Virus record (IMG/VR): IMGVR_UViG_3300036781_000418
Coordinates: 186,001-250,000 of that record
DNA: 64,000 nucleotides
Strand: one strand, 5' to 3'
Part shown: in pieces, positions 3,363-36,014 of the stretch
Position numbering within the stretch: the first letter of the stretch is position 1
Layout of the letters: every line of letters starts with the position of its first letter
Position numbers and translations under genes: made by a program
The notes under the pieces: generated by a model
Seen by the model: only the letters and a program-made list of their open reading frames with translations
Told to the model about the DNA's origin: nothing
The model's database searches: none

Positions 3363-3770
3363 ATGTCTCTCGAAACTCTGTTGATCACCGCCGCCAAGGA
3401 CCAGTGGCGCTTCGCCTCCCCCAAGGGCGACCTCGCCCTGGAAGACCTGTTCGGCCTGTCGCTGCAGTCCAACACGGGCAAGGCCAACCTGAACGACATC
3501 GCCATCGGCCTGCACACGGAAGCCAGCGCTTCGTCCCAAGCCATCTCGTTCGTCGAGCCCGCCATCAAGAACAGCGACTTGCCGGCTCAGAAGCTCGAGC
3601 TGGTCAAGATGGTGATCGCCATCAAGGTCGGTGAACGCGACGCCGCCCTCGCTGCCAAGTCCAAGGCCGAGCAGCGCCAGAAGATCATGCAGCTGATCGA
3701 GGCCAAGAAGAACGAGGCCATGGCCGGCCAGTCGCTCGACGAGCTGACCGCCATGCTCGCCGCGCTGTAA
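3363..3770 (+). CDS. hypothetical coiled-coil phage protein
   Basis: AAGGAG RBS; 135 aa; helical C-terminus. Confidence 0.75.
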   Translation: MSLETLLITAAKDQWRFASPKGDLALEDLFGLSLQSNTGKANLNDIAIGLHTEASASSQAISFVEPAIKNSDLPAQKLELVKMVIAIKVGERDAALAAKSKAEQRQKIMQLIEAKKNEAMAGQSLDELTAMLAAL

Positions 3771-3771
3771 T

Positions 3772-3796
3772 ACGGCGACACGAGGCGACGCCGGTT
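3772..3796 (+). repeat. dispersed intergenic repeat ACGGCGACACGAGGCGACGCCGGTT (copy 1)
   Basis: Same core at 11026-11052(-), 16591-16615, 48495-48511 (partial), 48562-48584(-) and 59838-59857. Confidence 0.85.
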
Positions 3797-3991
3797 GCAA
3801 CGACCGGCTGGTTGCTTAAGGCACCACACCAAAGGGCGACGGCCACCACCGTCGCCCTTTCTGGCACCTGGAGCTGATCCCAAACATGGTCCCAATCTTT
3901 GGGACGCCCCTCGGCCGGCCGCGTTAAATAATTCAGTTAAGCCAACGCGAATAGACGCCGCGGATAACAACCGACAACGAGGAGGTCTCGA

Positions 3992-12861: not shown

Positions 12862-12911
12862 ATCCTGACTAACTTGGTGTACGCGTAGCGTCGCCGAGTT
12901 AGAATGTACCT

Positions 12912-13205
12912 ACCATGTCGAAAGACACGGTGATTGTCGTAATTCGGCTTGAGTTGATGAGGGTAACACGGGGGTTCAACTCCCCCCAGCTCCACCAAAA
13001 GGGTTTACTGGAATCTTTCTGATGGGGCTGAACGGGTAATCGACTACGCTACTGAAATGATAGACGCGACATGCAAGGCGATCTGCACCGATGATGTTTG
13101 TCGGAAAGAAGCAAAATCTTTAAATGCTAACAACAGCGTTTACGCTCTCGCCGCTTAAAAACCGTGCGCAGCTGGGGCCGATCGCCTTATAATCCAAAGA
13201 TCACT
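12912..13205 (+). ncRNA. ssrA: circularly permuted (two-piece) tmRNA, tag ANNSVYALAA*
   Basis: T-arm plus CAGCTCCACCA (ends 12997) lies upstream of the GGGGCTG 5' end (13024); G3-U70 pair; resume codon GCT at 13126 after TAAAT; TAA at 13156-13158; outer ends approximate. Confidence 0.92.
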
Positions 13206-13229
13206 CAAGGGGCTTCGGCCCCTTGTTTT
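13206..13229 (+). terminator. intrinsic terminator of tmRNA
   Basis: CAAGGGGC-TTCG-GCCCCTTG-TTTT. Confidence 0.85.
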
Positions 13230-13303
13230 ATGCCCAGACCCAAACAATCTGTTGGCGTAAAACCGTAAATAGTCTATGATGCCTCCATTGGTCGAGGCAC
13301 CCC

Positions 13304-13732
13304 ATGTTTATCAAAGTCGCGCTAGCAGCTCTTACCTTCAGCTCCCTTGCGGTCGCGAGTCTCGTGACGCAACCTGAAGACAACTACCTTTCCGTCGCCA
13401 AGTCGCCGGACCTGGAGTTCACGATTGATAAACGAACGATGGTGGTCGACGTCGAGACCACCTCCTTCGAGTTCGACCTCCACACCAAGTTCGCTCATCC
13501 GATCGAGTACAAGGGTAAGGGTGCGACGGAGGTCGTTGAGCGGACGCTCGTAATGTGTCACGAGCAGGCCATGGTCACGTTGAAGCAGCGAGTCCTGGAC
13601 GAAGACGGCGGTCTGATCGACCAGCGTGACACCTCCAAAATTTACCCGTACGCCAAGCCCGGGTTTCACCGTCAACTCCTGCAGTTCTTCTGCGCCCCTG
13701 CGGAAAAGCGTAAGCCGGACACCACCGTCTGA
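13304..13732 (+). CDS. secreted/periplasmic hypothetical protein
   Basis: N-terminal signal peptide; TAAATA at 13266; GAGG RBS. Confidence 0.65.
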   Translation: MFIKVALAALTFSSLAVASLVTQPEDNYLSVAKSPDLEFTIDKRTMVVDVETTSFEFDLHTKFAHPIEYKGKGATEVVERTLVMCHEQAMVTLKQRVLDEDGGLIDQRDTSKIYPYAKPGFHRQLLQFFCAPAEKRKPDTTV

Positions 13733-13792
13733 ACCTGAACTTTACACTTACCGTTGTCACCGTTACATGACGATGTGTTAAGATGCCGATAC

Positions 13793-13869
13793 GACTCCAT
13801 AGCTCAGTTGGTTAGAGCAGCGGCCTTCAAAGCCGCCGGTCCTCGGTTCGAGCCCGAGTGGAGCCACCA
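13793..13869 (+). tRNA. tRNA with UCA anticodon (opal-reading), copy 1
   Basis: GACTCCA/TGGAGCC-ACCA acceptor; anticodon arm GCGGC-CTTCAAA-GCCGC; canonical D and T arms; short variable loop. Confidence 0.88.
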
Positions 13870-13928
13870 AATGTCGTCGTCCGTGGATGCGACGGATCAG
13901 GAGCTGTTGGCCTGAACTTTAGTCCATT

Positions 13929-14005
13929 GCGCCCATAGCTCAGCGGTCCAGAGCAACTTGCTTCAAACTTGTTGGTCCTCGGTTCGAATCCGAGTGGGCG
14001 CACCA
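13929..14005 (+). tRNA. tRNA with UCA anticodon (opal-reading), copy 2
   Basis: GCGCCCA/TGGGCGC-ACCA; anticodon arm ACTTG-CTTCAAA-CTTGT with two U-U mismatches. Confidence 0.78.
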
Positions 14006-14025
14006 TCAACCTAACGAGGCTTGCC

Positions 14026-14481
14026 ATGCTACCCGCCGTCTGCGTGCTTATCCAGCACCACCAAGACAAGGACTTCTACATCGCCGTCTCGCGTCGCGAC
14101 GACCCCTCCCACTGGGGGCTGCCTGGCGGCAAGGACGACGATGAACACGAGTCGAACATTGAAGCCGCCCAGCGTGAGTGCAACGAGGAGATCGGCATCC
14201 TCGCCGCCCTAACGTCCTTCGAGCCCATGTACGTGGGACTTTGTCCGGGTGACGTGAACTTCTGGGTGACCACCTACGCGTTCATGGACCCTGAGCCGAT
14301 CCACTTCGACGAGCTCGTGGCCGAGAAAGGCCTGGTCGTCGAGTGGAAGTCCGAGCAAGACCTCTGTGATCCGAAGTTGACGCCCTTCGCGGCCTACAAC
14401 GTCGAGGTCTTCAAGTCGCTCCGCAACCGTTGGCCAAGTGGCGTGATTCCAGTTCCTGGTGTCTCCTACTTCAAGGGCTGA
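14026..14481 (+). CDS. Nudix hydrolase
   Basis: WGLPGGK..ESNIEAAQRECNEEIG Nudix box; GAGG RBS before ATG 14026. Confidence 0.85.
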   Translation: MLPAVCVLIQHHQDKDFYIAVSRRDDPSHWGLPGGKDDDEHESNIEAAQRECNEEIGILAALTSFEPMYVGLCPGDVNFWVTTYAFMDPEPIHFDELVAEKGLVVEWKSEQDLCDPKLTPFAAYNVEVFKSLRNRWPSGVIPVPGVSYFKG

Positions 14482-14659
14482 CCATGCGCTGGGTCTACCT
14501 TATCCTGGTGGCGGCGGTGATCATCGCGATCGTCTCAATCACGGGACTCTGCTACTCCTTCGACGACCACAACTACCGCCTGGCCGGCGCGTCGTGCATT
14601 GGGTTGTTCGCGTCGTGGATGGCGATCATCGTCTTCTTTGTCAAGCTAAAGGACTAACC

Positions 14660-15028
14660 ATGCAACGCCTCAAGCTCTTTTTCAAGAAGTGGGGTCTTCG
14701 CGGCCAGCTGCAGACGATCGACGAGCAGGTTGAACGGCTCAAGGATAACTTGATCGAGCTTGAGCGGACGCTCACCTTGCTCCAGGCCGCCGAGACTGGA
14801 ATTGAGCCAGGCCCAGACGCCCCCGCCGCGCTCATGCGCGTGCAGTACCACATTGTTCAGGTGACCGACGCCATGAAGCGCAGCACGAGTCACCTCACTG
14901 AGTTCAAGCGGTTGCAGGCCATGCTTGAAGGGCTGCTGGCCGCCATGGACCTTGATCGCTTAGTCAACCAGAGCAACAGGTTGTCGGGGCCGACGATTGA
15001 TCGTATAATGGCCTCGTCAGATCGCTAA
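14660..15028 (+). CDS. hypothetical coiled-coil protein
   Basis: AAGGA RBS before ATG 14660. Confidence 0.6.
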   Translation: MQRLKLFFKKWGLRGQLQTIDEQVERLKDNLIELERTLTLLQAAETGIEPGPDAPAALMRVQYHIVQVTDAMKRSTSHLTEFKRLQAMLEGLLAAMDLDRLVNQSNRLSGPTIDRIMASSDR

Positions 15029-15057
15029 ATAGTTCCATCAACCCACTGGAGAATACC

Positions 15058-15411
15058 ATGGAATCGTGAGTCACTCAAAAGCACTACCTCTACACCATCT
15101 CCCGCCGCGACCTCCCACTCGCGCAACAGGCTGTCCAAGCTGCTCACGCGGCGATTGAACACGCCTACCAGTACGGCCGATCTCCCGATCACCACCCGTC
15201 GTACATTCACCTCACCGTTCGAAACCAGCACGAGCTGATCAAGCTCAAGGCGCGCCTGCACCTCAACGAGGTCGACACCGCCGAGTTCCACGAGCCCTAC
15301 CTTGATTGGGGACTCACGGCCATCTCTTGCCTCGTCACCGAACAACAACGTCACCTCACTAAAGGGCTCCAACTCTGGCGCCTTCCCACTCAGGAGAATC
15401 ACCATGAATGA
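15058..15411 (+). CDS. Pth2-like peptidyl-tRNA hydrolase with in-frame TGA at codon 4 (putative readthrough); absent from the ORF track
   Basis: GGAGA RBS; MES*VTQKHYLYTISRRDLPLAQQAVQAAHAAIEH...EFHEPYLDWGLTAIS..KGLQLW; RxDL..Q..HA and TA motifs of the PTH2 fold; stop overlaps the next start. Confidence 0.8.
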
Positions 15412-15901
15412 AGAACAGAAAGCCAAGCTTGAGCATCATCTTCCGATCCGCATGATCGTGCGCCTGCAAGATGGCAAGGTCCAAGGTCTGACGGAGGAAT
15501 CGTTCAGCATGAACTGGAGCGACAGCCGTGTGAACGTGTTCTGGTCGGGCAAGGCGTACAGCATGCTTGGTGAACATCAGCTGAATGGCGTGAAGTCTGC
15601 TGAACATAACAGTAAGCCTAACGATCCAAATGAGTTGATCATTGATCCTCTGGCTGAAGATTCACCGATTGAAGTAGACTGGGATAAGTGGCTCTCCGCT
15701 ACCAACAAGTACGACAAGCGAAACGCACCCTTCGTAGTGAAGTCACATGGCACTTGGCAGCTTCGCGCTATTTCAGCCGAAAGACAGGTTGCCAAACACA
15801 AGACCTTGGCGGAACAGTACCAGGCATACTACCAAGAAGAGGCTGACAAAGTCAACAAGATCAACGCAATACTAAACCCGCCAGAGGAGACCGAAGAATG
15901 A
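15404..15901 (+). CDS. hypothetical protein
   Basis: AGGAG RBS before ATG 15404 (MNEEQK). Confidence 0.7.
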   Translation: MNEEQKAKLEHHLPIRMIVRLQDGKVQGLTEESFSMNWSDSRVNVFWSGKAYSMLGEHQLNGVKSAEHNSKPNDPNELIIDPLAEDSPIEVDWDKWLSATNKYDKRNAPFVVKSHGTWQLRAISAERQVAKHKTLAEQYQAYYQEEADKVNKINAILNPPEETEE

Positions 15902-16509
15902 AGATCACCTACACCCCAAACCCGCTGAACACCGTCATCGAACTTGACGCCCATGAGCAGGAGCTGTTCAAGCTGAAGTTGAGGATCGAAGAGTACGAGA
16001 ACATGATGTTCAACGCCCACTGGAACTTGACTCGCTCGTCTGAGTACCTGGCCACCTTGCCGCGGATGAAGACGCTTGAGGACGCTCGTGCTGAAGCCAT
16101 CAAGAGGATCGACCCCGAGTACTGGTGCAGCGACGACCGCACCAAGCTGGACGACCGAATCGACGAGCTCTTTGACCACTACCTTGGTGAACTTAGCATG
16201 AACCACAGCGGTGACTGCACCTGCTTTCCGTGCTCCTGCGGTAAGTGTCACGCTGAGGGCATGCTCGGCCTCGACACGACCAAGGGCCTCAGCAAGTACA
16301 TGGCCTCCAAGATCGAACGTGCCTTCTCCTACAAGGACGGCGACGTGTGGAAGCAGCGTACCCTTGAGGAAGTCCTTGAGCGCATGCGCGGCTACGACCC
16401 GAAGATCACCGACGAAGGTGTTGACCCGGGCTGGCTCAAACGCGGTGAGGCTGAGTTCAACTCGTTCCCAAGTGGAAGGAGGAGAACACGCGTGCCCTCG
16501 CCTGGCTAG
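15898..16509 (+). CDS. hypothetical protein with Cys cluster
   Basis: HSGDCTCFPCSCGKCH putative metal-binding motif. Confidence 0.7.
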   Translation: MKITYTPNPLNTVIELDAHEQELFKLKLRIEEYENMMFNAHWNLTRSSEYLATLPRMKTLEDARAEAIKRIDPEYWCSDDRTKLDDRIDELFDHYLGELSMNHSGDCTCFPCSCGKCHAEGMLGLDTTKGLSKYMASKIERAFSYKDGDVWKQRTLEEVLERMRGYDPKITDEGVDPGWLKRGEAEFNSFPSGRRRTRVPSPG

Positions 16510-16540
16510 AGGCGTACGCCAACGAGCACTTCCCTTCACA

Positions 16541-16615
16541 CAGCGCTCACTCGTAGAGGCATTAGCTGACAGATAGTGCGGGTTCACGTTACGGCGACAC
16601 GAGGCGACGCCGGTT
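16541..16615 (+). repeat. ~75 bp intergenic element, inverted copy at 48562-48635
   Basis: CTCGTAGAGGCATTAGCTGACAGATAGTGCGGGTTCA...CGGCGACACGAGGCGACGCCGGT is nearly identical to the reverse complement of 48562-48635. Confidence 0.9.
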
Positions 16616-16702
16616 CAACCCGAAGAAGCAGTACACATAGTTCACCACAACGACCGAACAAATGCAACCGGTCACCAACCGTTAAGCCGAAAGGACCTTA
16701 CT

Positions 16703-17290
16703 ATGACATGGTCGTGAGTCACTCTACCGACCAGCTTTGAAGAGCTGAAGACCGCCATGCAGGCCGGATACCAGACCACGGGTCTGAGCTTCTGGGACCA
16801 TGGGGTGATGGTGAAGGGTTACTTCGAGGACCTGATGGGCCAGCGCACGCTGACCTGGCGGCTGCCTCAGTGGTACCTCACCCATGAGGATAAGATCAAG
16901 GACGCGCTCCGTCCAAGGATGGACCAGCTGACCACGTATCAGCTCTGGCATGACCTTGGCAAGCCGTACTGTCGCACCGTCGACGAGCAAGGTAAAGTAC
17001 ATTACCCTGACCACGCCGACGTCTCAAGTCACATCTGGCGCAAGCTTGGTGGAGATCCATTGATCGCCGACTTGATTGAACGGGACATGCTGTGTCACCA
17101 GCTTCGTCCAGCGGAGGCCCATGAGTTCGCCTCCAACCCCAACGCACTCGCACTGCTGATCACCGCCCTCTGCGAGCTGCACGCCAACGCCTCAATGTTT
17201 GGTGGCTTGGAATCCGAGTCCTTCAAGATCAAGTGGAAGCGACTCGACAAGTGCGGTAACATCATCCTCAACAGTATCTTCAAGGAGTAA
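16703..17290 (+). CDS. HD-domain phosphohydrolase with in-frame TGA at codon 5 (putative readthrough)
   Basis: AAGGA RBS; MTWS*VTLPTSFEELKTAMQAG.. is in frame with the 16757 ORF; DHG...LWHDLGKP..HYPDHA..DMLCH HD motifs. Confidence 0.75.
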
Positions 17291-29460: not shown

Positions 29461-29534
29461 CAGAGTGTGGTGCCAAGTGGACGGCGACCTGCTTTGGAGA
29501 CAGGAACATGTCGGTTCGAGGCCGACCGCTCTGA
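29461..29534 (+). tRNA. tRNA-Pro(UGG), atypical, no encoded CCA
   Basis: CAGAGTG/CGCTCTG-A; TTTGGAG loop; weak D arm. Confidence 0.55.
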
Positions 29535-29732
29535 CAAAGCACATCTAGCGAGAACCCAAGTGCAAGGTTAGCCAAGCACAACGGTGCGATAGAATGCATT
29601 CATGCAAGTTGATGTTGAAGTTTGACATCGACAAAACAACTGAGGCCTTGCTTCAGTGACCTACCTCGGTAGGTACGCTCATTAAAAATTTGACGTGACA
29701 TCTAGTCCAAGGGCACCAACCCTTGGACATCT

Positions 29733-29806
29733 GCGCCCATAGCTCAATGGTAGAGTATCGCTTTGACATGGCGATTACGAAGGTTCGATTCCTTCTGGGC
29801 GCACCA
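29733..29806 (+). tRNA. tRNA-Val(GAC)
   Basis: TCGCT-TTGACAT-GGCGA; CCA encoded. Confidence 0.9.
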
Positions 29807-29809
29807 TTG

Positions 29810-29957
29810 TTCATAAACCCAAGAGTTACCGCTTGCAATCGGTTATCTACTTTAACTTGGTGTAAAAACCCGGAGTGCGGTTCGAGTCCGCACAACGCCC
29901 ATACTGGCTTCGGGGGCAATCTCCGAGAGCTACTTTTGTTGCTCTTGGGTTTATGAA
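29810..29957 (+). ncRNA. Y-RNA-like element A
   Basis: 16 bp outer stem TTCATAAACCCAAGAG/CTCTTGGGTTTATGAA; TACCG-N9-GGTTATC; internal T-arm GTGCGG-TTCGAGT-CCGCAC. Confidence 0.65.
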
Positions 29958-29966
29958 TTTTTCTGT

Positions 29967-30052
29967 GTGGACATGACTGAGAGGCTGAAGGTGACGGGCT
30001 GTAACCCCGTTCTGTAAAAAGCGCGTAGGTTCGAATCCTACTGGCCACACCA
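29967..30052 (+). tRNA. tRNA-Tyr(GUA)
   Basis: ACGGG-CTGTAAC-CCCGT; long variable arm; CCA. Confidence 0.9.
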
Positions 30053-30061
30053 AGTTTAGAT

Positions 30062-30135
30062 GCGGGATTCGTATAGTGGTATTACCTCAGCCTTCCAAGC
30101 TGATGATGAGGGTTCGATTCCCTTATCCCGCTCCA
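30062..30135 (+). tRNA. tRNA-Gly(UCC)
   Basis: TCAGC-CTTCCAA-GCTGA; U73-CCA. Confidence 0.93.
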
Positions 30136-30150
30136 CATTAAGAGGCTTGA

Positions 30151-30618
30151 ATGGCTAGAGGAAGAATTGAAGTCTCACGTGAGCAACTCCTCCAAGCAAT
30201 TGAATCGACAGATTCTGCCGTTCAAGCTTCTAAGCAGTTAGGATTGATGTACACCACGTTTATTCGCAGGTGTAAAGAGCATCAACTATATGCTCCAAAT
30301 CAAGGTGGTAAAGGAACTCAAAAACCTCGACCACAGATGAAAATCGCTCTTGAGGATATCTTCAACGGTAAACATTTGATGGATTCAAAAGCCATTAAAC
30401 GGAAACTGTTTGAAGCAGGTCTTAAGAAAGAAGAATGCGAGTGTTGTGGAATAGGTCCAGTGTGGAATGGCAAGAAGCTTACGCTTCAGCTTGACCACAT
30501 TGATGGAGATCGAACTCACAATGCTTTTGAGAATCTGAGAATTCTCTGCCCTAACTGTCACACTCAGACAGCCACATTTAGTAAGGGTAAAAATAGGACA
30601 CATGCGTCTGTGGCGTAA
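30151..30618 (+). CDS. HNH endonuclease (free-standing, homing-type)
   Basis: CECCG..LQLDHIDGDRTHNAFENLRILCPNCHTQT; AT-rich; stop lies inside the downstream tRNA-Leu. Confidence 0.9.
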   Translation: MARGRIEVSREQLLQAIESTDSAVQASKQLGLMYTTFIRRCKEHQLYAPNQGGKGTQKPRPQMKIALEDIFNGKHLMDSKAIKRKLFEAGLKKEECECCGIGPVWNGKKLTLQLDHIDGDRTHNAFENLRILCPNCHTQTATFSKGKNRTHASVA

Positions 30619-30689
30619 TTGGTAGCCGCGCTAGGTTGAGGGCCTAGTCCTATAATGGGGTGCAGGTTCGAGTCCTGTCAGACGCACCA
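30604..30689 (+). tRNA. tRNA-Leu(GAG)
   Basis: CTAGG-TTGAGGG-CCTAG; long variable arm; ACCA. Confidence 0.9.
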
Positions 30690-30696
30690 TGTTTTT

Positions 30697-30771
30697 GGGG
30701 GAGTACCTCAGTGTTAGAGGGCCCGCTTTTTAAGCGGAAAGTCGAAGGTTCAACTCCTTCCTCCCCCACCA
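30697..30771 (+). tRNA. tRNA-Lys(UUU)
   Basis: CCCGC-TTTTTAA-GCGGA; ACCA. Confidence 0.85.
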
Positions 30772-30775
30772 GTTT

Positions 30776-30891
30776 GAGAACCGTCGTTGATTGGTTATCG
30801 GAAAAGTCAGGGGTGCTTAAACCCCAGGATGAGCATGGTTCAAGCCCGTGCACCCTCGCAAGAGGTTTTACCGATCTGCATTTTTGTTCTC
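30776..30891 (+). ncRNA. Y-RNA-like element B
   Basis: GAGAAC/GTTCTC outer stem; AACCG-N9-GGTTATC; internal T-arm-like GCATGG-TTCAAGC-CCGTGC. Confidence 0.6.
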
Positions 30892-30901
30892 TCCGTTTTC
30901 C

Positions 30902-30996
30902 GACGAACCGTCGTCGAAGGGTTATCTAGTTCACGACTAAAGGGCGCGTATGTGTCCGGCTGCAGAAGCCATCACCCTTCACATCATTTGTTTGTC
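30902..30996 (+). ncRNA. Y-RNA-like element C
   Basis: GACGAAC/GTTTGTC and GAAGGGT/ACCCTTC stems enclosing three small hairpins; AACCG-N9-GGTTATC. Confidence 0.65.
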
Positions 30997-31000
30997 ACTT

Positions 31001-31075
31001 GGGCTTCTAGTATAGGGGGAATTACTACTGTCTTGCACGCAGTGAATCGGGGTTCGAGTCCCCGGAGGTCCACCA
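31001..31075 (+). tRNA. tRNA-Ala(UGC)
   Basis: ACTGT-CTTGCAC-GCAGT; G3-U70; ACCA. Confidence 0.9.
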
Positions 31076-31084
31076 AGTTTTAAT

Positions 31085-31161
31085 CGGAGTGTAGCGCAGT
31101 CTGGTAGCGCATCTGCTTTGGGAGCAGAGGGTCCCAGGTTCGAATCCTGGTACTCCGACCA
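31085..31161 (+). tRNA. tRNA-Pro(UGG)
   Basis: CGGAGTG; TCTGC-TTTGGGA-GCAGA; ACCA. Confidence 0.95.
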
Positions 31162-31221
31162 CGTTTTCGCACGGCACGGATGACCGTTATCATCCACACT
31201 ACTACGACTACAAGGAACTAA

Positions 31222-31509
31222 ATGGTACACGTAAAGATCATGTCCGGTGAGGACACGCACGATTCTTACCCAGGTAAGAACTACACGCTGATCACAGTCA
31301 ATGACCGAGATCGGATTCAGTTCGGCGAATGGGGTTCGCTCTTCGGTAACCCAGCCAACACAGCTGACGATCGCGGTGGAAACACCGAGGTGATGATCGT
31401 GATTCGCGAGAAGAGTTCAGAGCAGGAGACGTACCCGCTGTTGGGGAACGTCTACATCATGAACGATCAAGGTAAGACGATTGCGACTCGCCAGAAGAGC
31501 ATCAATTAA
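31222..31509 (+). CDS. hypothetical protein
   Basis: AAGGA RBS; 95 aa between tRNAs. Confidence 0.65.
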   Translation: MVHVKIMSGEDTHDSYPGKNYTLITVNDRDRIQFGEWGSLFGNPANTADDRGGNTEVMIVIREKSSEQETYPLLGNVYIMNDQGKTIATRQKSIN

Positions 31510-31516
31510 GAACAAC

Positions 31517-31624
31517 GCGGACGTAGCTCAGTTGGATTAGAGCTCGGCACACAAAACAAAGGCGGCCGGCTTGCCGATCAGTAGTGTGACGCGGTCAGAG
31601 GTTCGAGCCCTCTCGTACGCACCA
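31517..31624 (+). ncRNA. tRNA-like RNA with an expanded anticodon loop
   Basis: Normal acceptor, D and T arms with ACCA; CACAC/GTGTG stem closes a ~31 nt loop with no 7-nt anticodon loop. Confidence 0.7.
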
Positions 31625-31806
31625 AACGCGGACTCTCCCTGCTCACAGCGCTCGGAACGCCCATACAACCCATGGAAGAGCTCCTAGCTAGTACCTAGAG
31701 GCGGACTTTCGGCATCACTTAAAAACTGGTGCGGTTGGTGGTTAGCTTGTATGGTGCTCCCTGAGTAAAGAGGACCCGACCGGACAAGTCGCAAAACTGT
31801 TCCGAT

Positions 31807-31882
31807 GCAGGGGTAGCTCAGTTGGTAGAGTACTTGTTTGCCAAGCAAGACGTCGCGGGTTCGAACCCCGTTCCCTGCTCCA
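31807..31882 (+). tRNA. tRNA-Gly(GCC)
   Basis: CTTGT-TTGCCAA-GCAAG; TCCA. Confidence 0.93.
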
Positions 31883-31888
31883 AATTTT

Positions 31889-31978
31889 GGACACTTGGCC
31901 GAGAGGCTTAAGGCACCGGTCTTGAAAACCGACGGGCCCTTACGGGTCCCGTGAGTTCGAATCTCACAGTGTCCGCCA
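31889..31978 (+). tRNA. tRNA-Ser(UGA)
   Basis: CCGGT-CTTGAAA-ACCGA; long variable arm; GCCA. Confidence 0.92.
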
Positions 31979-31983
31979 GAACA

Positions 31984-32045
31984 TAGCAACCGCACGTGCA
32001 GGGTTATCATCCATTCGCTCTCCCTGTACAACCTCTTTGTTGCTA
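31984..32045 (+). ncRNA. minimal Y-RNA-like element D
   Basis: TAGCAAC/GTTGCTA and GTGCAGGG/CCCTGTAC stems; pyrimidine-rich loop; AACCG-N9-GGTTATC. Confidence 0.65.
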
Positions 32046-32056
32046 GTATTTCAGTT

Positions 32057-32180
32057 AGGGATGTCGTCCAGTGGTAGGACAGCCGCCTCAACGTCGTGAA
32101 TGACATCTTTAGTTGCGCAAGTAACCGCCGCTTCATGGTTATCCAAGCAGCTTACGTGGGTTCGATCCCCACCATCCCTA
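32057..32180 (+). ncRNA. tRNA (Gly-like) with the Y-type stem inserted in the anticodon loop
   Basis: AGGGATG/CATCCCT; D and T arms intact; ~53 nt insert AAC..CTTTAGTTGC-GCAA-GTAACCG-N9-GGTTAT. Confidence 0.7.
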
Positions 32181-32224
32181 ACCCCTTGACTTCAAGGGAA
32201 AGTATCCATTGGGTTCTTTCCTTT

Positions 32225-32354
32225 GGGGTCGTAGTGTAGTGGACAGCACGTTAACATCGATTGCTCCCTTTGTTGGACTTTGAATCCAACCGCTCGTGAT
32301 TGGTTATCTTTCTACAAAAAGACAGGATGGGTTCGAATCCCATCGACTCCACCA
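32225..32354 (+). ncRNA. tRNA-like RNA (G3-U70, ACCA) with the Y-type stem inserted 5' of the anticodon arm
   Basis: GGGGTCG/CGACTCC-ACCA; insert TAAC..CTTTGTTGGA-CTTTGAA-TCCAACCG-N9-GGTTA. Confidence 0.7.
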
Positions 32355-32367
32355 AAATTCTTTCCAT

Positions 32368-32496
32368 GCAGTCTTGGCGTAACGGTAGCGCGCGAACAGT
32401 CGTTCGCATCTTTAGTTGTCGCAAGGCAACCGTTCGTGAATGGTTATCTAAAGTACAAAGACGAGGTCCGTGGTTCAATTCCCGGGGACTGCACCA
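32368..32496 (+). ncRNA. tRNA-like RNA (ACCA) with the Y-type stem inserted in the anticodon stem
   Basis: GCAGTCT/GGACTGC-ACCA; insert AAC..CTTTAGTTGTC-GCAA-GGCAACCG-N9-GGTTA. Confidence 0.7.
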
Positions 32497-32564
32497 ACTA
32501 TTGGAGACGACAATGACAAACGAGAAAGGGCGATTGTGTTAGGTTAACTACACAAGGAGCCCAA

Positions 32565-32942
32565 ATGAGCCGAACCTTTCGGTGCAAGAACTACGAAGAC
32601 ACGCAGAACACGAGCTGGGACCGTCAAGGTCGCAAGATCGGTGGTTTCTACTGCGAGTACAGCTACGCGAACGAAGTCTACGACAGCAACCTTCACTGGG
32701 GCTGGCGGTACGTGCACATCTTTCGCCCTCCAACTCAGGAGGAGCTGATCAAGGCGTACTGGCGGAACCACGGCGAAAGCCGACACCGCTGCGCTCGCTC
32801 TCCCAGTCGGTACCACCGCGGCACGAGGATGGCGGAGAATCGTCGAATCAACAACCAGGAGCTGCATAAGTTCCTGAAGAACCCAGATCACGAGCCGATG
32901 CTCGAGGCCAACCCTCGAAACTGCTGGTGGGACTGGAGCTGA
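32565..32942 (+). CDS. hypothetical basic protein
   Basis: AAGGAG RBS; 125 aa. Confidence 0.7.
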   Translation: MSRTFRCKNYEDTQNTSWDRQGRKIGGFYCEYSYANEVYDSNLHWGWRYVHIFRPPTQEELIKAYWRNHGESRHRCARSPSRYHRGTRMAENRRINNQELHKFLKNPDHEPMLEANPRNCWWDWS

Positions 32943-33048
32943 TTTTCCGTTGTGAGCCTTGATCGGCCAAAGTCGCTGACTTATACGGAACCTGTGCAGC
33001 CTCATCAGCTGCACCGTGGTGACCATGGACAGTCACCGATCATTCAAC

Positions 33049-33135
33049 GCGGGTGTGGCGAAATTGGTGGCCGCGCTAGGTTTAGGTCCTAGTGGATTTA
33101 CATCCTTGCAGGTTCGAATCCTGTCACCCGTACCA
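33049..33135 (+). tRNA. tRNA-Leu(UAG)
   Basis: CTAGG-TTTAGGT-CCTAG; long variable arm; ACCA. Confidence 0.92.
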
Positions 33136-33299
33136 GTTTGGGGAGCATGGTTAGCGCCGTGTTCAGGCTAGCTTGGCCAAGCGGTTTAGTAGCGGACGGC
33201 CGTTCGCGAGCGACTTAGAGATGATGGTAGTGCTGTTCGACTCAGCGCCATCGAAAGCCACCCAAAACCCATAAATACTCCATACGTTTTGGAGTAGCC

Positions 33300-33629
33300 A
33301 TGAAGGTTGCACAGTTGTTCGAAGAGCTGAAAGCCTACACAGGTGGTCGGCTTTCAAAGACTCTCGAGAATGCAATGTTGGAGTTCTGCGATGCGTTTGA
33401 CATCGACAGCTTCTCGGTCTCAACTGAGAAGTTTCATCAGCCGCATCCAACTAAAGGTTGGAGCGATACGGTAAACGTGAAGAACTTCTTCATCAACATG
33501 GGGACTGAAAAGAACGCGACGCTGTTGAAACGGTACTTGAAGGACAAGGGCTTTGGAGTCGAAGATCGATACCGCCCTGAACATGTCGTCAATACTTGGA
33601 ACGTTCCAAAGAAGTTCAAGTCAAAGTAA
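33300..33629 (+). CDS. hypothetical protein with MKVAQLFEE N-terminus
   Basis: TAAATA at 33272; GGAG RBS. Confidence 0.7.
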   Translation: MKVAQLFEELKAYTGGRLSKTLENAMLEFCDAFDIDSFSVSTEKFHQPHPTKGWSDTVNVKNFFINMGTEKNATLLKRYLKDKGFGVEDRYRPEHVVNTWNVPKKFKSK

Positions 33630-33632
33630 CAC

Positions 33633-33720
33633 GCGTCGTGACCCTACATCGGTCTTCTAAGCCGATGACGAAAAAGAGTAGGATGGACGTCCACGGGTTC
33701 GATTCCTGCACGCCGCTCCA
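33633..33720 (+). ncRNA. D-arm-less tRNA-Arg(UCU)-like RNA
   Basis: GCGTCGT/ACGCCGC-TCCA; ATCGGT-CTTCTAA-GCCGAT nested in a CCTAC/GTAGG stem; T-loop TTCGATT. Confidence 0.55.
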
Positions 33721-33738
33721 TAACACAGAGGACCGATC

Positions 33739-34101
33739 ATGATTTTGCTTGAGTACCCCGACAACAAGAGCGCCCGCCAACACCTTACCTTGGGTAAGGA
33801 CTACGCGGTCGTTCGAGAGCTTGGCAACGGTCTCGTGATCGAGGCCGACAACTCAACTCCTGAGTCGCCCAACTTTCACACGCTGTTGGCTTCACGCTTC
33901 AAGGAAGTCGGTGTTGTGGTAAACCGTGACTGCACGAAAGCGAAGCCGATGCCGTTGGAGCTTGGACCGAGAGCGGTCGAGCTCAACATCATCTGGGACC
34001 ATGATGACATTGAAGACCTAGCTCCCGACCTTGACTCACGTTACGCCCACTTCAAGTGTGGTTCATGTGGGCACGATTGGTGGGCGGATTTAGGCGATTA
34101 A
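33739..34101 (+). CDS. hypothetical protein with C-terminal CxxC
   Basis: GAGGA RBS; KCGSCGHDW. Confidence 0.65.
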   Translation: MILLEYPDNKSARQHLTLGKDYAVVRELGNGLVIEADNSTPESPNFHTLLASRFKEVGVVVNRDCTKAKPMPLELGPRAVELNIIWDHDDIEDLAPDLDSRYAHFKCGSCGHDWWADLGD

Positions 34102-34104
34102 CTT

Positions 34105-34192
34105 GGAGATGTGGCAGAGTGGCCTATCGCACAACCTTGGAAAGGTTGAGGACTTTATCGTCCCATGGGTTCGAATCCCATCATCTCCTCCA
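34105..34192 (+). tRNA. tRNA-Ser(GGA)
   Basis: CAACC-TTGGAAA-GGTTG; long variable arm; CCA. Confidence 0.9.
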
Positions 34193-34198
34193 GACAGA

Positions 34199-34276
34199 AG
34201 CAGGGTAGCTCAGCCAGGTAGAGCGCTGGTCTCATAAGCCAGAGGTCGTGGGTTCAAATCCCTCCCGTTGCAACCA
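34199..34276 (+). tRNA. tRNA-Met/Ile2(CAU)
   Basis: CTGGT-CTCATAA-GCCAG; imperfect acceptor stem; ACCA. Confidence 0.75.
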
Positions 34277-34357
34277 ACACGTGGACCCTTGTTCACGGTA
34301 CAGCGACCGTAGCGTCGCAGTAGAATTGACTCATCAACAACGCATTGGACCGATGCT

Positions 34358-34669
34358 ATGCAACACAAGATGAACCAACTGATGCGTGTCAGCAAGACAC
34401 TTGGTTTCACTGAGTTCGCGTTTCCACTCGAACTCACGTACGGTCCAGCCTACGACGGCTACTGGATTGATCGAGTTGGACGTCTCTTTTCCACCAAGCG
34501 TGGTGAAGTTACGCCGCTGATCGCCAAGTGCACGGCCTTCGTCAAGGGCAACAGCTACGGCCTCATCATCCGTGGTAAGAACAAGTCGGTCTCTGGAACC
34601 GAACTGCTCCATGAACTGCGCAGCTCGCCCGAATGGCCGGTGCTGCTCGAACAATGGGGCAACATGTAA
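34358..34669 (+). CDS. hypothetical protein
   Basis: ORF between tRNAs; TAGAAT upstream. Confidence 0.55.
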   Translation: MQHKMNQLMRVSKTLGFTEFAFPLELTYGPAYDGYWIDRVGRLFSTKRGEVTPLIAKCTAFVKGNSYGLIIRGKNKSVSGTELLHELRSSPEWPVLLEQWGNM

Positions 34670-34675
34670 GATCAT

Positions 34676-34761
34676 GCGCATGTGGTGTAATTGGTAGCCA
34701 CACTTCTCTCAAAAGGAAGCGTCCGTAGGGCGTGTCGGTTCGAGTCCGACCATGCGCACCA
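34676..34761 (+). tRNA. tRNA-Leu(CAA)
   Basis: CTTCT-CTCAAAA-GGAAG; ACCA. Confidence 0.92.
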
Positions 34762-34893
34762 GGTGAGACCCCCGAAGTGACTAGGACGCGAGGCGGTCAT
34801 CGAGTAGAGGCGGCCACGGAATCGTGGCGGTAAGTAGTGAACACAACCTCCTCTACCGACCAGTGAGGTGACTGGATGAGAAAGCAGGGTTAA

Positions 34894-34993
34894 ACGCACT
34901 GATGAGCTGGTGAGAGTCCAGCGAAACGGGAAGGTGAACAGCCGATCGAGCGCTAGGTCGCGGCTCTCGACGCAGTATCCTTTCCGTATGCGT
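34894..34993 (+). ncRNA. type I hammerhead ribozyme
   Basis: Stem I ACGCA/TGCGT; core CTGATGA; stem II GCTGG/CCAGC; GAAA; stem III CGGGAAGG/CCTTTCCG; GTA cleavage triplet ending at 34988. Confidence 0.85.
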
Positions 34994-35007
34994 AAATAGA
35001 AACATAT

Positions 35008-35093
35008 GCTGGAGTAGCCAAGTGGTTGACGGCAACTGCCTTGTAAGCAGTCGGAGTTATCCCGCGCAGGTTCGAATCCTGTCTCCAGCTCCA
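35008..35093 (+). tRNA. tRNA-Thr(UGU) with an unusually long variable arm
   Basis: ACTGC-CTTGTAA-GCAGT; extra arm CGGAGTTATCCCGC; TCCA. Confidence 0.8.
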
Positions 35094-35336
35094 AGAAGTT
35101 CCAGGTGACTACGTGTAGGGGGTCTGGCCCAGTGCACACAGAAAATGCGTAGGATATTGGCCGTGAGAACCATGGTTTATGAGGCATGAGAAAAAGATTT
35201 GTCGGGACTGTGCCTCCGGAAACGACATGACCTGCACGAGAATAAGAGCAATGGTAAGCTTTGCAGGGTGCCACAAATATTTGTCAACGCGGAAGCAGTT
35301 GACCGGGGCTCTGTGTTTCATCCCCAACCTATCAAT

Positions 35337-35415
35337 GTCGAAGTGGGAGAGTGGATTACTTCCGACAGGCTGCAACCCTGTAGACGCATCGGTTCGATTC
35401 CGGCCTTCGACTCCA
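35337..35415 (+). tRNA. tRNA-Cys(GCA)
   Basis: ACAGG-CTGCAAC-CCTGT; U73-CCA. Confidence 0.85.
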
Positions 35416-35528
35416 AACGGGACCCTACGTAAGGGTAAAACGTCTGACCTGACGGGGAAACGCTTGAAGGGGCGCCTGACGGTGGGAGAAACAGACGACG
35501 AAACTGTAGGTCCTTCGGTTTCAACAAT

Positions 35529-35614
35529 GCGACTGTGGCGTAATTGGTAGCCGCGCAACGCTCAGAACGTTGTGGTCCTAGACCGTGGAGGTTCGAGTCC
35601 TCTCAGTCGCACCA
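35529..35614 (+). tRNA. tRNA-Leu(CAG)
   Basis: CAACG-CTCAGAA-CGTTG; ACCA. Confidence 0.92.
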
Positions 35615-35623
35615 TTGATCAAT

Positions 35624-35711
35624 AGCGGGGTAGAGCGTAGTTTGGTAGCGTGTTGGGCTCATAACCCAGCGTCGTAAGACCCCGGAGGTTCGAGTCCTCC
35701 TCCCGCAACCA
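35624..35711 (+). tRNA. initiator-like tRNA-fMet(CAU) with an extra arm
   Basis: 1:72 mismatch; GGG/CCC anticodon stem; CTCATAA loop; variable hairpin GTC-GTAA-GAC. Confidence 0.75.
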
Positions 35712-35718
35712 CAACAAT

Positions 35719-35844
35719 GGTCCAATAGTGTAGTAGCACGATCAACAAAAGCACATCATCATGGCGGTAGCCAAGCCTAGGAGAGCGCATCTCCCACTGA
35801 TGAAGGAGCAGGTGGAGAATCGGGACTCCTGCGTTGGATCACCA
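35719..35844 (+). ncRNA. tRNA-like RNA with a large structured central insertion
   Basis: GGTCCAA/TTGGATC-ACCA; short D arm; TCATCA/TGATGA stem; GCAGG/CCTGC T-stem with an oversized loop. Confidence 0.55.
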
Positions 35845-35849
35845 GAATT

Positions 35850-36014
35850 AAGCAACCGATAGATAACGGTTATCAGAAAGTAGCGTCGAAAGACTTGTGG
35901 GTTCGAGTCCCACCTGAGAGTCACCTAAGACGTGATGGTTTGTACTCAGTGGCGGAATTGGTAAACGCACAACTCCGGCCGCAAGGCCATCTCCGTGTCG
36001 CTCCTTTGTTGCTT
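35850..36014 (+). ncRNA. YrlA-like Y RNA (circularly permuted tRNA-Leu-like module)
   Basis: AAGCAAC/GTTGCTT outer stem; AACCG-N9-GGTTATC; then T-arm, loop-closed acceptor stem CTGAG/CTCAG, D-arm TGGCGGAATTGGTAAACGC. Confidence 0.75.

Follow-up and report, generated by a model that had tools for sequence, protein, structure and literature searches.

Putative suppressor-tRNA gating of genes for a predicted Pth2-fold enzyme and a predicted HD-domain enzyme in giant phages

Results

Two genes with early in-frame TGA codons lie downstream of two tRNA(UCA) genes and a permuted tmRNA

We analyzed a 64,000-nt stretch of the 342-kb genome of a giant phage (IMG/VR record IMGVR_UViG_3300036781_000418, positions 186,001 to 250,000; hereafter, the window). 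A gene for a predicted Pth2-fold protein and a gene for a predicted HD-domain protein each start with a ribosome-binding site (RBS), an ATG, two or three sense codons, and an in-frame TGA (Table 1). They lie 1-3 kb downstream of two genes for tRNAs with anticodon UCA and a two-piece tmRNA. An initial annotation, which was made from the sequence alone, had pointed out this arrangement, and we found every element of it where it had been placed. Thus, the observation is confirmed.

Table 1. Features of the locus, in window coordinates
Position	Strand	Feature	Details
12886..13249	+	Two-piece (permuted) tmRNA	Tag ANNSVYALAA; ARAGORN 12905-13249; Rfam beta_tmRNA 113.9 bits at 12886-13228, tmRNA_permuted 105.8 bits
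13793..13869	+	tRNA, anticodon UCA (opal suppressor type), copy 1	77 nt; loop CUUCAAA; CCA encoded; generic Rfam tRNA model (not tRNA-Sec) 64.2 bits; minimum-energy fold is a cloverleaf with one A2.C71 mismatch
13929..14005	+	tRNA, anticodon UCA, copy 2	77 nt; 71% identical to copy 1; generic Rfam tRNA model (not tRNA-Sec) 62.5 bits; two U.U mismatches in the anticodon stem; minimum-energy fold is not a clean cloverleaf; function less certain
15058..15069	+	Leader of gene 1	ATG GAA TCG TGA (TGA at 15067-15069); GGAGA 7 nt upstream
15058..15411	+	Predicted Pth2-fold gene (gene 1), leader included	113 codons after the TGA, with no ATG, GTG, or TTG
15064..15076	+	13-nt context, first copy	TCGTGAGTCACTC, around the stop
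15898..16509	+	Cys-rich 203-aa ORF between the two gated genes	Conserved accessory in this clade and in RsoM2USA (gp92); tblastn hits in 11 loci at the same position; no Pfam or PHROG family found
16585..16625	+	Repeated intergenic motif upstream of gene 2	TACGGCGACACGAGGCGACGCCGGTT; four copies in the window; may be a phage promoter or regulatory repeat; many contig ends of the source sequencing run pile up at 16538-16614
16703..16717	+	Leader of gene 2	ATG ACA TGG TCG TGA (TGA at 16715-16717); preceded by AAAGGA
16703..17290	+	Predicted HD-domain gene (gene 2), leader included	190 codons after the TGA
16712..16724	+	13-nt context, second copy	TCGTGAGTCACTC

The 13-mer around the two stops occurs exactly twice in the window. 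However, near-matches with up to 2 mismatches are at chance level, and the exact pair is only meaningful because both copies sit at the same place in two gene leaders. A scan of the window for ATG, 1-8 codons, a stop, and a long ORF found no other convincing case with an RBS. TGA is the commonest ordinary stop of this phage, ending 40 of 79 ORFs in the window, and the code is therefore not reassigned. Although raw reads did not confirm the two TGAs, sequencing error is excluded by the presence of the same feature in about 90 homologous gene starts, including those of independently sequenced cultured phages.

The two genes encode predicted enzymes that act on tRNA 3' ends

The alignment profile of the gene 1 product matches the archaeal Pth2 structure 2zv3 (E 6.4e-9). 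Its AF2 model has a pLDDT of 92.8, and the top Foldseek matches of the model are Pth2/Bit1 proteins (TM 0.65-0.74). The Gly-Lys loop of archaeal Pth2 is absent, however, which leaves the substrate of the Pth2-like enzyme uncertain. The gene 2 product is predicted to be an HD domain of the type found at the C-terminus of CC-/A-/CCA-adding tRNA nucleotidyltransferases, with invariant H28, H78-D79, H99, D123, and H127. Its profile matches 3wfp (E 7.6e-5), its AF2 model has a pLDDT of 96.8, and Foldseek returned 3wfr/3wfq (TMq 0.6) and O67911, Q9RV39, and the multifunctional CCA proteins. By contrast to the initial annotation, which considered the two genes unrelated, we found that one PHROG family (phrog_14850) spans both, that they are fused in either order in phages pT24 and XacN1, and that they are adjacent in most phages, implying a functional linkage of the two enzymes.

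Leader stops are conserved and their type co-varies with the neighboring suppressor anticodon

We next tested whether the leader stop is conserved in homologues and co-occurs with suppressor tRNAs, a check that the initial annotation had proposed for UCA tRNAs. Of 108 distinct homologous gene starts, 90 have ATG, 0-7 codons, and a stop, compared to a background of about 5-6% for other ORFs. Most leaders have 2-3 sense codons. The stop is TAG in 85, TGA in 5, and TAA in 0 of the 90 leaders, and the base after the stop is A in 66, G in 19, C in 5, and T in 0, so that it is a purine in 85 of 90. The identical 13-nt context is lineage-specific, and the closest relatives use TAG with other flanks. 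What is conserved instead is a very short leader, the stop type, and a purine after the stop. The tmRNA lies within 10 kb of the module in 15 related loci, and is thus a frequent neighbor but not a constant part.

The type of leader stop matches the nearby suppressor tRNA. A tRNA(CUA) gene lies within 10 kb, and often within 2 kb, in about 37 TAG-gated loci. A tRNA(UCA) gene accompanies the TGA-gated loci L007 (this window), L074, and L082 of the comparison set, and no TGA-gated locus has a tRNA(CUA). These counts are not phylogenetically independent. On a tree of the HD proteins, the TGA label needs 3 changes, at least 2 of which are forced by well-supported branches, and the window is nested in a TAG-using clade. 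About a third of the TAG-gated loci show no suppressor tRNA inside the flank that was retrieved, although it may lie elsewhere in these 200-500 kb genomes, and the TGA-gated locus L034 shows none. Locus L060 pairs a TAG leader with a tRNA that ARAGORN called as UCA, although that call has an atypical loop.

This covariation was further supported by cultured phages. The match between stop and anticodon predicts a TGA leader in phage Atu_ph07, which is reported to carry a UCA suppressor (PMC6102473), and we found ATG ATT GGC GAA CAC TTT TGA ATT in front of its Pth2 gene. GAP32 has ATG GCA CAA TAG with a tRNA(CUA) 3.1 kb away. ME3, Arash, pT24, XacN1, RsoM2USA, and fHe-Yen9-04 all have TAG leaders, and XacN1 and RsoM2USA are reported to carry CUA suppressors (PMC5852040, PMC8504454). 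The papers that we read on four of these phages name no target for their suppressor tRNAs, and the XacN1 authors looked for one and found none. Bacterial genomes provide a natural control, in that six loci in bacterial chromosomes or megaplasmids have the gene pair without leader stops and without a suppressor tRNA. By contrast, 13 of 15 gated contigs from metagenome-assembled genomes (MAGs) have a tRNA(CUA), which in several is the only tRNA found in the locus, about 70-190 nt after the HD gene.

Coding appears to start at the leader stop. The residues between the stop and a conserved downstream Met are themselves conserved and align with the N-termini of ungated genes. Some lineages also have TAGs in mid-gene. 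Reading TAG as sense barely lengthens ORFs in the related loci, which argues against genome-wide recoding there as well.

Discussion

We propose, with reasonably high confidence, that both enzymes are translated only when the suppressor tRNA of the phage reads the early stop. In this three-part translational gate, the phage encodes a suppressor tRNA, a predicted Pth2-fold ester hydrolase, and a predicted CCA-enzyme-type HD phosphohydrolase, and the mRNAs of both enzymes begin with an RBS, an ATG, one to three sense codons, and the stop codon that this tRNA would read. Ribosomes that start at the leader ATG would terminate after 3-4 residues unless the charged suppressor tRNA wins against the release factor, which would be RF2 here and RF1 in TAG lineages. 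Our analysis establishes the architecture, its conservation, the match between stop type and anticodon, the physical linkage to the tRNA, the purine after the stop, the lack of any alternative ATG, GTG, or TTG start in the Pth2-like gene of the window, and the absence of genome-wide recoding; by contrast, readthrough itself is inferred from comparative sequence evidence alone, without proteomic, ribosome-profiling, or reporter data. That a stop at codon 3-5 is a good place for a gate is inferred from established knowledge: release factors act poorly on very short peptidyl-tRNAs (the minigene and peptidyl-tRNA drop-off literature), a 3' purine favors decoding by suppressors (Bossi; Miller and Albertini), and no truncated protein is wasted. 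Because an efficient opal suppressor would read through half of the genes of this phage, suppression must be weak or context-dependent. Nearest-neighbor comparison of the tRNAs did not indicate which amino acid would be inserted.

The interpretation in the initial annotation is therefore only partly supported. Its proposals that the in-frame TGAs are functional and that the opal tRNAs of the phage may read them are supported by the comparative evidence, which makes these tRNAs the most likely readers, and its Pth2 and HD assignments and its exclusion of genome-wide recoding also held. By contrast, we found no evidence for its proposed emergency switch, in which low RF2 activity or an attack on termination or tRNA supply turns on rescue enzymes. 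Moreover, what had been described from a single genome is a widespread module.

Four other explanations were considered, and each seems unlikely. The leader could be a mini upstream ORF of the start-stop type, with the enzymes initiated downstream by reinitiation and the suppressor tRNA irrelevant. Consistent with this possibility, most HD genes have a nearly invariant Met 6-13 codons after the stop that could in principle serve as a start, three leaders have ATG directly after the TAG, and ATT, a rare initiator, is the commonest next codon. However, an upstream ORF could end in any stop, yet none of the 90 leaders uses TAA, even in AT-rich phages, and the stop type tracks the tRNA anticodon. 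In the Pth2-like ORF of the window, the codon after the stop is GTC and no usual start codon follows. The Met of the HD genes is also conserved inside fusion proteins, where it cannot be a start, the residues before it are modeled as a confident helix, and GAP32-like HD genes carry a TAG at about codon 47. It is about equally doubtful that readthrough occurs without the phage tRNA, such that the early UGA senses RF2 activity and near-cognate host tRNAs read it when termination is impaired, while the UCA tRNAs serve another purpose. UGA is the leakiest stop, early stops are poorly terminated, and competition with the release factor must modulate any suppression, so this idea cannot be excluded for fine-tuning. 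However, it does not explain why relatives use TAG with CUA tRNAs and TGA only with UCA tRNAs, why the cognate suppressor is in several MAG loci the only tRNA found, next to the gated gene, or why ungated copies occur where no suppressor is present.

The remaining alternatives are still less likely. Decaying pseudogenes or assembly errors might be suspected in a single metagenomic assembly whose raw reads were uninformative at the two sites, but this explanation is effectively refuted by the recurrence of the feature in many independently sequenced cultured phages and by otherwise intact ORFs with invariant catalytic motifs and confident AF2 models. Likewise, ARAGORN labels both tRNAs as tRNA-SeC because of the UCA anticodon, which might suggest selenocysteine tRNAs or UGA as a sense codon genome-wide. 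However, only two genes in the window have in-frame TGAs, the tRNAs have a short variable loop and match the generic tRNA model, and relatives use TAG at the same site.

The proposed gate can be compared with several described systems. In crAss-like and Lak phages with reassigned TAG or TGA (Ivanova 2014; Borges/Peters et al., bioRxiv 10.1101/2021.08.26.457843), a phage-encoded suppressor tRNA also reads in-frame stops in phage genes while the host uses the standard code, and timing of gene expression is the proposed role. There, dozens to hundreds of in-frame stops are spread through late genes and the codon is largely lost as a terminator, whereas here one stop sits at codon 2-8 of one or two specific genes, the codon remains an ordinary terminator, and the rest of the locus reads normally in code 11. 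In Streptomyces, the bldA tRNA-Leu(UAA) controls translation of a few genes that carry its TTA codon, so that tRNA abundance becomes a regulatory input, but bldA reads a rare sense codon, whereas here the codon is a stop, so that the tRNA would compete with a release factor and the off state would be termination after 3-4 residues. Expression of prfB (RF2) likewise depends on a termination contest at an early in-frame UGA, but prfB needs a +1 frameshift, has no dedicated tRNA, and encodes the terminator itself, whereas here the downstream frame is the zero frame and the readout is a tRNA. Synthetic suppressor-tRNA feed-forward gates (PMC7969014; PMC13276491) use the same logic, in that a target gene with an early amber codon is expressed only if the suppressor tRNA is co-expressed; the module described here would be a natural, widely conserved counterpart. 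Lambda bar minigenes are also two-to-four-codon ORFs whose translation produces very short peptidyl-tRNAs, the substrate class of Pth enzymes, but they are stand-alone and toxic when Pth is limiting, whereas here the mini-ORF is in frame with, and directly abuts, a Pth2-fold coding sequence and its stop type matches a phage tRNA. Finally, PTH2 in group 2/3 jumbo phages has already been noted, together with a proposed rescue of cleaved peptidyl-tRNAs (Iyer et al. 2021, PMC7824862), and in Atu_ph07 the gated Pth2 sits beside an RnlA ligase and a phosphatase. That paper does not contain the word suppressor and makes no link between PTH2 and the suppressor tRNAs.

The purpose of the gate is inferred only. 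We favor the possibility that output of the two enzymes is tied to the amount of functional, charged phage tRNA. This would give either a delay timer, as bldA does for TTA genes, or a self-limiting loop in which excess enzyme damages or deacylates tRNA 3' ends, including those of the suppressor, and so shuts off its own synthesis. We rank lower the possibility that the enzymes are made in proportion to suppressor activity to clean up its side effects, which fits the neighboring tmRNA. The likely job of the module is tRNA 3'-end repair or peptidyl/acyl-tRNA recycling during infection. The pairing of early leader stops with cognate suppressor tRNAs recurs and co-varies in scores of giant phages, and probably explains why such phages keep suppressor tRNAs.

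Architecture of the proposed gated locus

The window belongs to a 342,591-bp IMG/VR viral contig, that is, a jumbo phage, with 55-60% G+C. The two-piece (permuted) tmRNA scored above the gathering score in two Rfam covariance models (beta_tmRNA, 113.9 bits, gathering score 84; tmRNA_permuted, 105.8 bits, gathering score 47), and ARAGORN assigned it the tag ANNSVYALAA. Downstream of it are two 77-nt tRNAs with anticodon UCA, each in a normal 7-nt CUUCAAA loop with U33 and a purine at position 37. Both have a short variable loop and reached more than 60 bits on the generic Rfam tRNA model, which was the best family for both, instead of matching the tRNA-Sec model. Copy 1 folds as a cloverleaf with one A.C mismatch, whereas copy 2 has a weak anticodon stem with two U.U mismatches, and its minimum-energy fold differs. 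A NUDIX hydrolase gene (Pfam E 3.3e-9) starts 21 nt after the second tRNA(UCA), but is not conserved in related loci. Further downstream is an array of 21 additional tRNA genes in a lower-GC stretch (50-54%). ARAGORN found no tRNA for Trp, Phe, Ile, Asn, Asp, Glu, Gln, or His in the window, and the L-shaped repeats detected in the array are simply the tRNA T-arms.

Gene 1 reads ggagaatacc ATG GAA TCG TGA GTC ACT, after which the frame stays open for 113 codons that contain no ATG, GTG, or TTG. Gene 2 reads aaaggaccttact ATG ACA TGG TCG TGA GTC ACT C, after which the frame stays open for 190 codons. The 13-mer TCGTGAGTCACTC is exact at both sites and occurs nowhere else in the window, and a third GTGAGTCAC site lies inside a minus-strand ORF and is due to chance. 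No other ORF in the 64 kb shows a credible leader consisting of an RBS, ATG, a few codons, and a stop. Thus, the initial annotation, which reported two genes interrupted by an early in-frame TGA in the same 13-nt context close to a tmRNA and two tRNA(UCA) genes, is confirmed as an observation. The contigs of the source sequencing run were uninformative about the two TGA codons and exposed only a repeat just upstream of gene 2, where more than 40 contigs end. This region overlaps one of four copies in the window of a motif of about 26-41 nt (core ACGAGGCGACGCCGGTT, often preceded by TACGGCGAC), and the contig ends there suggest many more copies in the genome; the motif may be a phage promoter or another regulatory repeat.

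Positions of features in the window and in related loci (L numbers denote loci of the survey; L087 is from phage Atu_ph07)
Locus	Position	Feature
Window	3766-3806, 16585-16625, 48481-48521, 59833-59873	Repeated motif, four copies; one in the intergenic region just upstream of the HD gene
Window	12886-13249	Two-piece tmRNA
Window	13793-13869	tRNA(UCA), copy 1
Window	13929-14005	tRNA(UCA), copy 2
Window	14026-14481	NUDIX hydrolase gene
Window	to 15411	Gene 1, predicted Pth2-like protein
Window	15898-16509	Cys-rich ORF
Window	16538-16614	Repeat at which contigs of the source run end
Window	to 17290	Gene 2, predicted HD phosphohydrolase
Window	29461-37367 and 51518-51593	Array of 21 further tRNA genes
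Window	51912	Third GTGAGTCAC site, inside a minus-strand ORF
L005 and 9 other loci	2437-2997 (L005)	Cys-rich ORF
L001	1483-1815 and 1818-2384	Genes mishandled in public annotations
L002	1480-1815	Gene mishandled in public annotations
L087	2501-2902	Gene mishandled in public annotations
L111	328-1228	Gene mishandled in public annotations
L087	1-784 and 3782-5038	RnlA RNA ligase and metallophosphatase on either side of the TGA-gated Pth2 gene
L078	10647-10724	ARAGORN 'tta' tRNA call
L060	7956-8031	ARAGORN 'tca' tRNA call
L025	7850-8008	Two tRNA(CUA) genes
L072	5509-5663	Two tRNA(CUA) genes
L022, L026, L056, L058, L064, L068		Two tRNA(CUA) genes
L059	5443-6033	195-aa ORF family preceded by ATG TAG ATG
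L036 and relatives	882-1466 (L036)	195-aa ORF family preceded by ATG(+0-3 codons) TAG

Predicted identities of the two proteins

A megablast of the 4.4-kb region against 50,697 phage records found nothing, so relatives are detectable only at the protein level. Likewise, neither protein gave a Pfam hit as a single sequence, and profiles of aligned homologues and structure models were needed to place them. The profile of the first protein matches archaeal Pth2 (2zv3) at E 6.4e-9, and also 24bt, 1rzw, 1rlk, 1wn2, and 1q7s. Its AF2 model has a pLDDT of 92.8, and the top 15 PDB matches are all Pth2/Bit1 or Pth2-like, at TM 0.65-0.74. Together with the absence of a Pfam hit, these results imply that the protein belongs to a distant branch of Pth2. 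R-x-D, Q-x-x-H-A, an acidic residue (E75), and T83 are conserved and align with Pth2 motifs, but the Gly-Lys loop of archaeal Pth2 falls in a 2-residue gap. The second protein is predicted to be an HD phosphohydrolase, in which H28, H78-D79, H99, D123, and H127 are invariant in 53 sequences. Its nearest relatives by profile and by fold are the HD regions of CC-, A-, and CCA-adding tRNA nucleotidyltransferases: the profile matches residues 261-367 of 3wfp at E 7.6e-5, and Foldseek returned 3wfr/3wfq at TMq of about 0.6 and probability 1.0, as well as O67911, Q9RV39, Q72K91, and the multifunctional CCA proteins. Both enzymes are therefore predicted, from fold and motifs, to work on tRNA 3' ends.

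The initial annotation described the two genes as unrelated, and this claim did not hold. One PHROG family (phrog_14850, 270 positions) covers both, the genes are adjacent in GAP32-like phages, ME3, and Arash, and they are fused as Pth2-HD in pT24 and as HD-Pth2 in XacN1. A structure-based prediction of a complex between the HD and Pth2-like proteins scored 0.02 against a mark of 0.32, which is no evidence either way. A Cys-rich ORF (motif GDCT..CSC..CHAE) without a Pfam or PHROG family sits between the Pth2-like and HD genes in this clade and in RsoM2USA (gp92), and it may be a third, ungated component of the module.

An early in-frame stop is conserved in both gene families

We next determined whether the leader stop occurs in homologous genes. 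The first cultured phages examined all had it: fHe-Yen9-04 (ATG TCT CAC TAG), ME3 (ATG ACT TAG), Arash (ATG CTG TAG), XacN1 (ATG AAG TAG), RsoM2USA (ATG TTG TAG and ATG AAA TCG TAG), pT24 (ATG AAA TAG), and GAP32 (ATG GCA CAA TAG). A scan of IMG/VR with the HD alignment then returned 80 loci, which were surveyed together with six loci from phage records. Of 108 distinct gene starts of the two families, 90 have ATG + 0-7 codons + stop directly before the homology, comprising 85 TAG, 5 TGA, and 0 TAA, and 68 of the leaders have only 2 or 3 sense codons. The base after the stop is A in 66, G in 19, C in 5, and T in 0. By contrast, an ATG 1-4 codons before the upstream stop occurs in about 5-6% of other ORFs in the same loci. 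A few lineages have extra TAGs in mid-gene, for example at about codon 47 of the HD gene in all GAP32-like phages. Reading TAG as sense hardly changes ORF lengths in these loci, so they use the standard code and the stops are gene-specific.

A search for further gated gene families in the loci recovered a divergent Pth2 family with the same TAG leader, which accounted for loci that had seemed to lack Pth2. It also recovered a 195-aa ORF family of unknown function without a Pfam hit, which is preceded by ATG(+0-3 codons) TAG and in locus L059 by ATG TAG ATG; this is either a further gated gene or a chance start-stop, and it looks like chance. The identical 13-mer in the two genes of the window is specific to this lineage, since the closest relatives have ATG CAA TCG TAG ATC (Pth2) and ATG ACG TAG GTT (HD). 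Speculatively, the HD leader may have been patched from the Pth2 leader when the lineage moved from TAG to TGA.

Gene callers miss, truncate, or split these genes in public records. fHe-Yen9-04 has no CDS for the Pth2-like gene, and its HD gene is split into g408 and g409. The HD gene of GAP32 is split into GAP32_398 and GAP32_399, with a spurious overlapping 'membrane protein', and the starts of ME3_195 and Atu_ph07 AUZ95035.1 are truncated.

The stop type matches the neighbouring suppressor tRNA

ARAGORN analysis of all loci, which covered 10-kb flanks rather than whole genomes, placed tRNA(CUA) within 10 kb of about 37 TAG-gated modules, often within 2 kb. tRNA(UCA) accompanies the TGA-gated modules of this window and of two related loci, L074 and L082, and no TGA-gated module has a CUA tRNA. 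The only apparent mismatch is the TAG-gated locus L060, where the nearby 'tca' call has an atypical loop, CGTCATG. This call and a 'tta' (ochre) call in locus L078 both have atypical anticodon loops or arms and may be false calls or unusual tRNAs. Several modules carry two tRNA(CUA) genes, tandem in most and up to about 0.7 kb apart in L064, which mirrors the two UCA copies in the window, where both copies now have UCA. Comparison of the suppressor tRNAs with canonical tRNAs for amino-acid identity, with the anticodon masked, gave Met, Val, Thr, and Arg as top neighbours at similar scores. Moreover, identity to other suppressors (71-79%) is no higher than to canonical tRNAs, so we do not claim orthology of the UCA and CUA tRNAs.

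On a maximum-likelihood tree of the HD proteins, the TGA state needs three changes, at least two of them forced by well-supported branches, and the window is nested in a TAG-using clade with 100/98 support. TAG to TGA switches therefore happened more than once, each time with the matching tRNA. We then predicted that Atu_ph07, which is reported to carry a UCA suppressor with no known target (PMC6102473), should have a TGA leader. This prediction was borne out by ATG ATT GGC GAA CAC TTT TGA ATT in front of a Pth2 gene. This gene lies between a T4-like RnlA RNA ligase and a metallophosphatase, which is an RNA heal-and-seal neighbourhood, and no HD homologue was detected there.

Bacterial genome assemblies provided a natural control. 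Six loci on genuine chromosomes or megaplasmids (L090, L091, L092, L097, L101, and L108) carry the Pth2+HD pair with ordinary starts and no suppressor tRNA. They are in Sphingomonas, Pseudomonas nitroreducens, Bosea, Psychromonas, and the P. serbica and P. fluorescens megaplasmids of about 1 Mb. The Sphingomonas pair is a single fused ORF, and L091 has 8 tRNA genes nearby. These loci could be the cellular source of the phage module, or a sink for it. In contrast, fifteen MAG contigs carry TAG-gated copies, and 13 of these have tRNA(CUA). In eight MAG contigs labelled Obscuribacterales, Melainabacteria, or Cyanobacteria (L094-L096, L098-L100, L102, and L103), a minimal cassette is present, in which a TAG-gated HD gene, mostly with the leader ATG ACG TAG GTA, is followed about 70-190 nt later by tRNA(CUA). 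This is the only tRNA found in these loci (4.9-12.6 kb), and no Pth2 gene was detected in them; the contigs may be phage DNA binned into MAGs. Simple Fisher tests gave p of about 4e-4 for stop type against anticodon and 5e-4 for gated against suppressor nearby, but these counts are not phylogenetically independent, and the tree and the Atu_ph07 prediction are the stronger arguments.

Probable translation across the leader stop

For the Pth2-like gene there is often no alternative to translation across the stop, because the ORF has no canonical start in this window or in many relatives. In the HD gene, a nearly invariant Met lies 6-13 codons after the stop and could be a start. However, the same Met is conserved inside fusion proteins, where it cannot be a start, and the residues between the stop and that Met are conserved (x-F-E/D-E-L-x-x-x-M), form a confidently modelled helix, and align with the N-termini of ungated genes, which begin about where the gated ones have their stop. 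A plain uORF would also have no reason to avoid TAA or to track a tRNA anticodon. A prfB-type +1 frameshift is excluded because leader ATG, stop, and domain share one frame in both genes. Selenocysteine insertion is excluded by the shape of the tRNAs, which are 77 nt long with a short variable loop, whereas tRNA-Sec has a length of about 90 nt or more, a long variable arm, and an extended acceptor stem. Genome-wide reassignment of the kind found in code 4, 25, or 15-type phages is excluded because TGA ends 40 of 79 ORFs in the window and only two genes in the 64 kb carry it in frame. The possibility that the genes are pseudogenes was likewise considered and rejected.

Discussion

The data support a gate, in which the two enzymes would be made only when the phage's own suppressor tRNA out-competes the release factor at an early stop. 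The arrangement of the leaders, their conservation, and the correspondence between stop type and anticodon were observed directly, whereas readthrough itself, charging of the tRNAs and their decoding of UGA, the activities of both enzymes on tRNA, and the purpose of the gate are inferred. Release factors act poorly on very short peptidyl-tRNAs, as seen with minigenes and drop-off, and a 3' purine improves suppressor decoding, so that a stop at codon 3-5 followed by a purine is consistent with such a gate. In this phage the gate cannot be very efficient or context-free, because TGA is the commonest terminator. The initial annotation proposed that UGA is read through either by the phage opal tRNAs or when RF2 activity is low, as an emergency switch, and this interpretation is partly supported: low RF2 is not excluded as a modulator, but it does not explain the covariation with the tRNA.

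We consider three versions of the purpose. The gate may be a delay or lock that ties enzyme production to the build-up of functional phage tRNA, as in bldA; it may be a self-limiting loop, in which enzymes that attack tRNA 3' ends shut off their own synthesis once they deplete the charged suppressor; or it may produce rescue or repair enzymes in proportion to suppressor side effects, which would fit the tmRNA that lies nearby in 15 of the loci. A further possibility, which we regard as unlikely on present evidence although it is not excluded, is that the suppressor tRNA is both the regulator and a substrate-like reporter. In this view, synthesis of the two enzymes, which needs a charged and intact suppressor, is switched off as soon as they start to harm the tRNA pool. 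The module would then be a tRNA-based homeostat with no known natural precedent. It would also be what keeps 'orphan' suppressor tRNAs alive in standard-code phages, and so a stable first step toward full stop-codon reassignment, with at least two independent coordinated switches from TAG/CUA to TGA/UCA showing how easily such a pair can move between stop codons.

PTH2 in jumbo phages has been described, with a proposed role in rescuing cleaved tRNAs, although the word 'suppressor' does not occur in that paper (PMC7824862). Read-through of amber stops revealed no targets for the two CUA suppressors of XacN1 (PMC5852040), and the RsoM2USA and Atu_ph07 papers only suggest many possible targets ('several potential genes'). 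Full-text literature searches found no description of leader-stop gating of these genes, although subscription journals were not covered and prior description cannot be ruled out. We place the module within phage suppressor-tRNA recoding and tRNA-gated translation, and not in a category of its own; what sets it apart is that the stops are gene-specific in loci that use the standard code.

The module gives a concrete and testable answer to a question left open in several jumbo-phage genome papers, namely what suppressor tRNAs do in phages that use the standard code. It would be a natural, conserved example of a tRNA/stop-codon AND gate, a device that synthetic biologists have built by hand, and the pairs (TAG/CUA versus TGA/UCA) appear to be easy to re-target. 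It also has practical value for the annotation of these genes. Moreover, it links the gate to two predicted enzymes of tRNA 3'-end chemistry that sit near tRNA arrays, tmRNA, and, in Atu_ph07, an RNA ligase, which points to phage-run tRNA repair or recycling during the contest with host tRNA-targeting defences. Finally, it offers a plausible intermediate on the road to stop-codon reassignment in phages.
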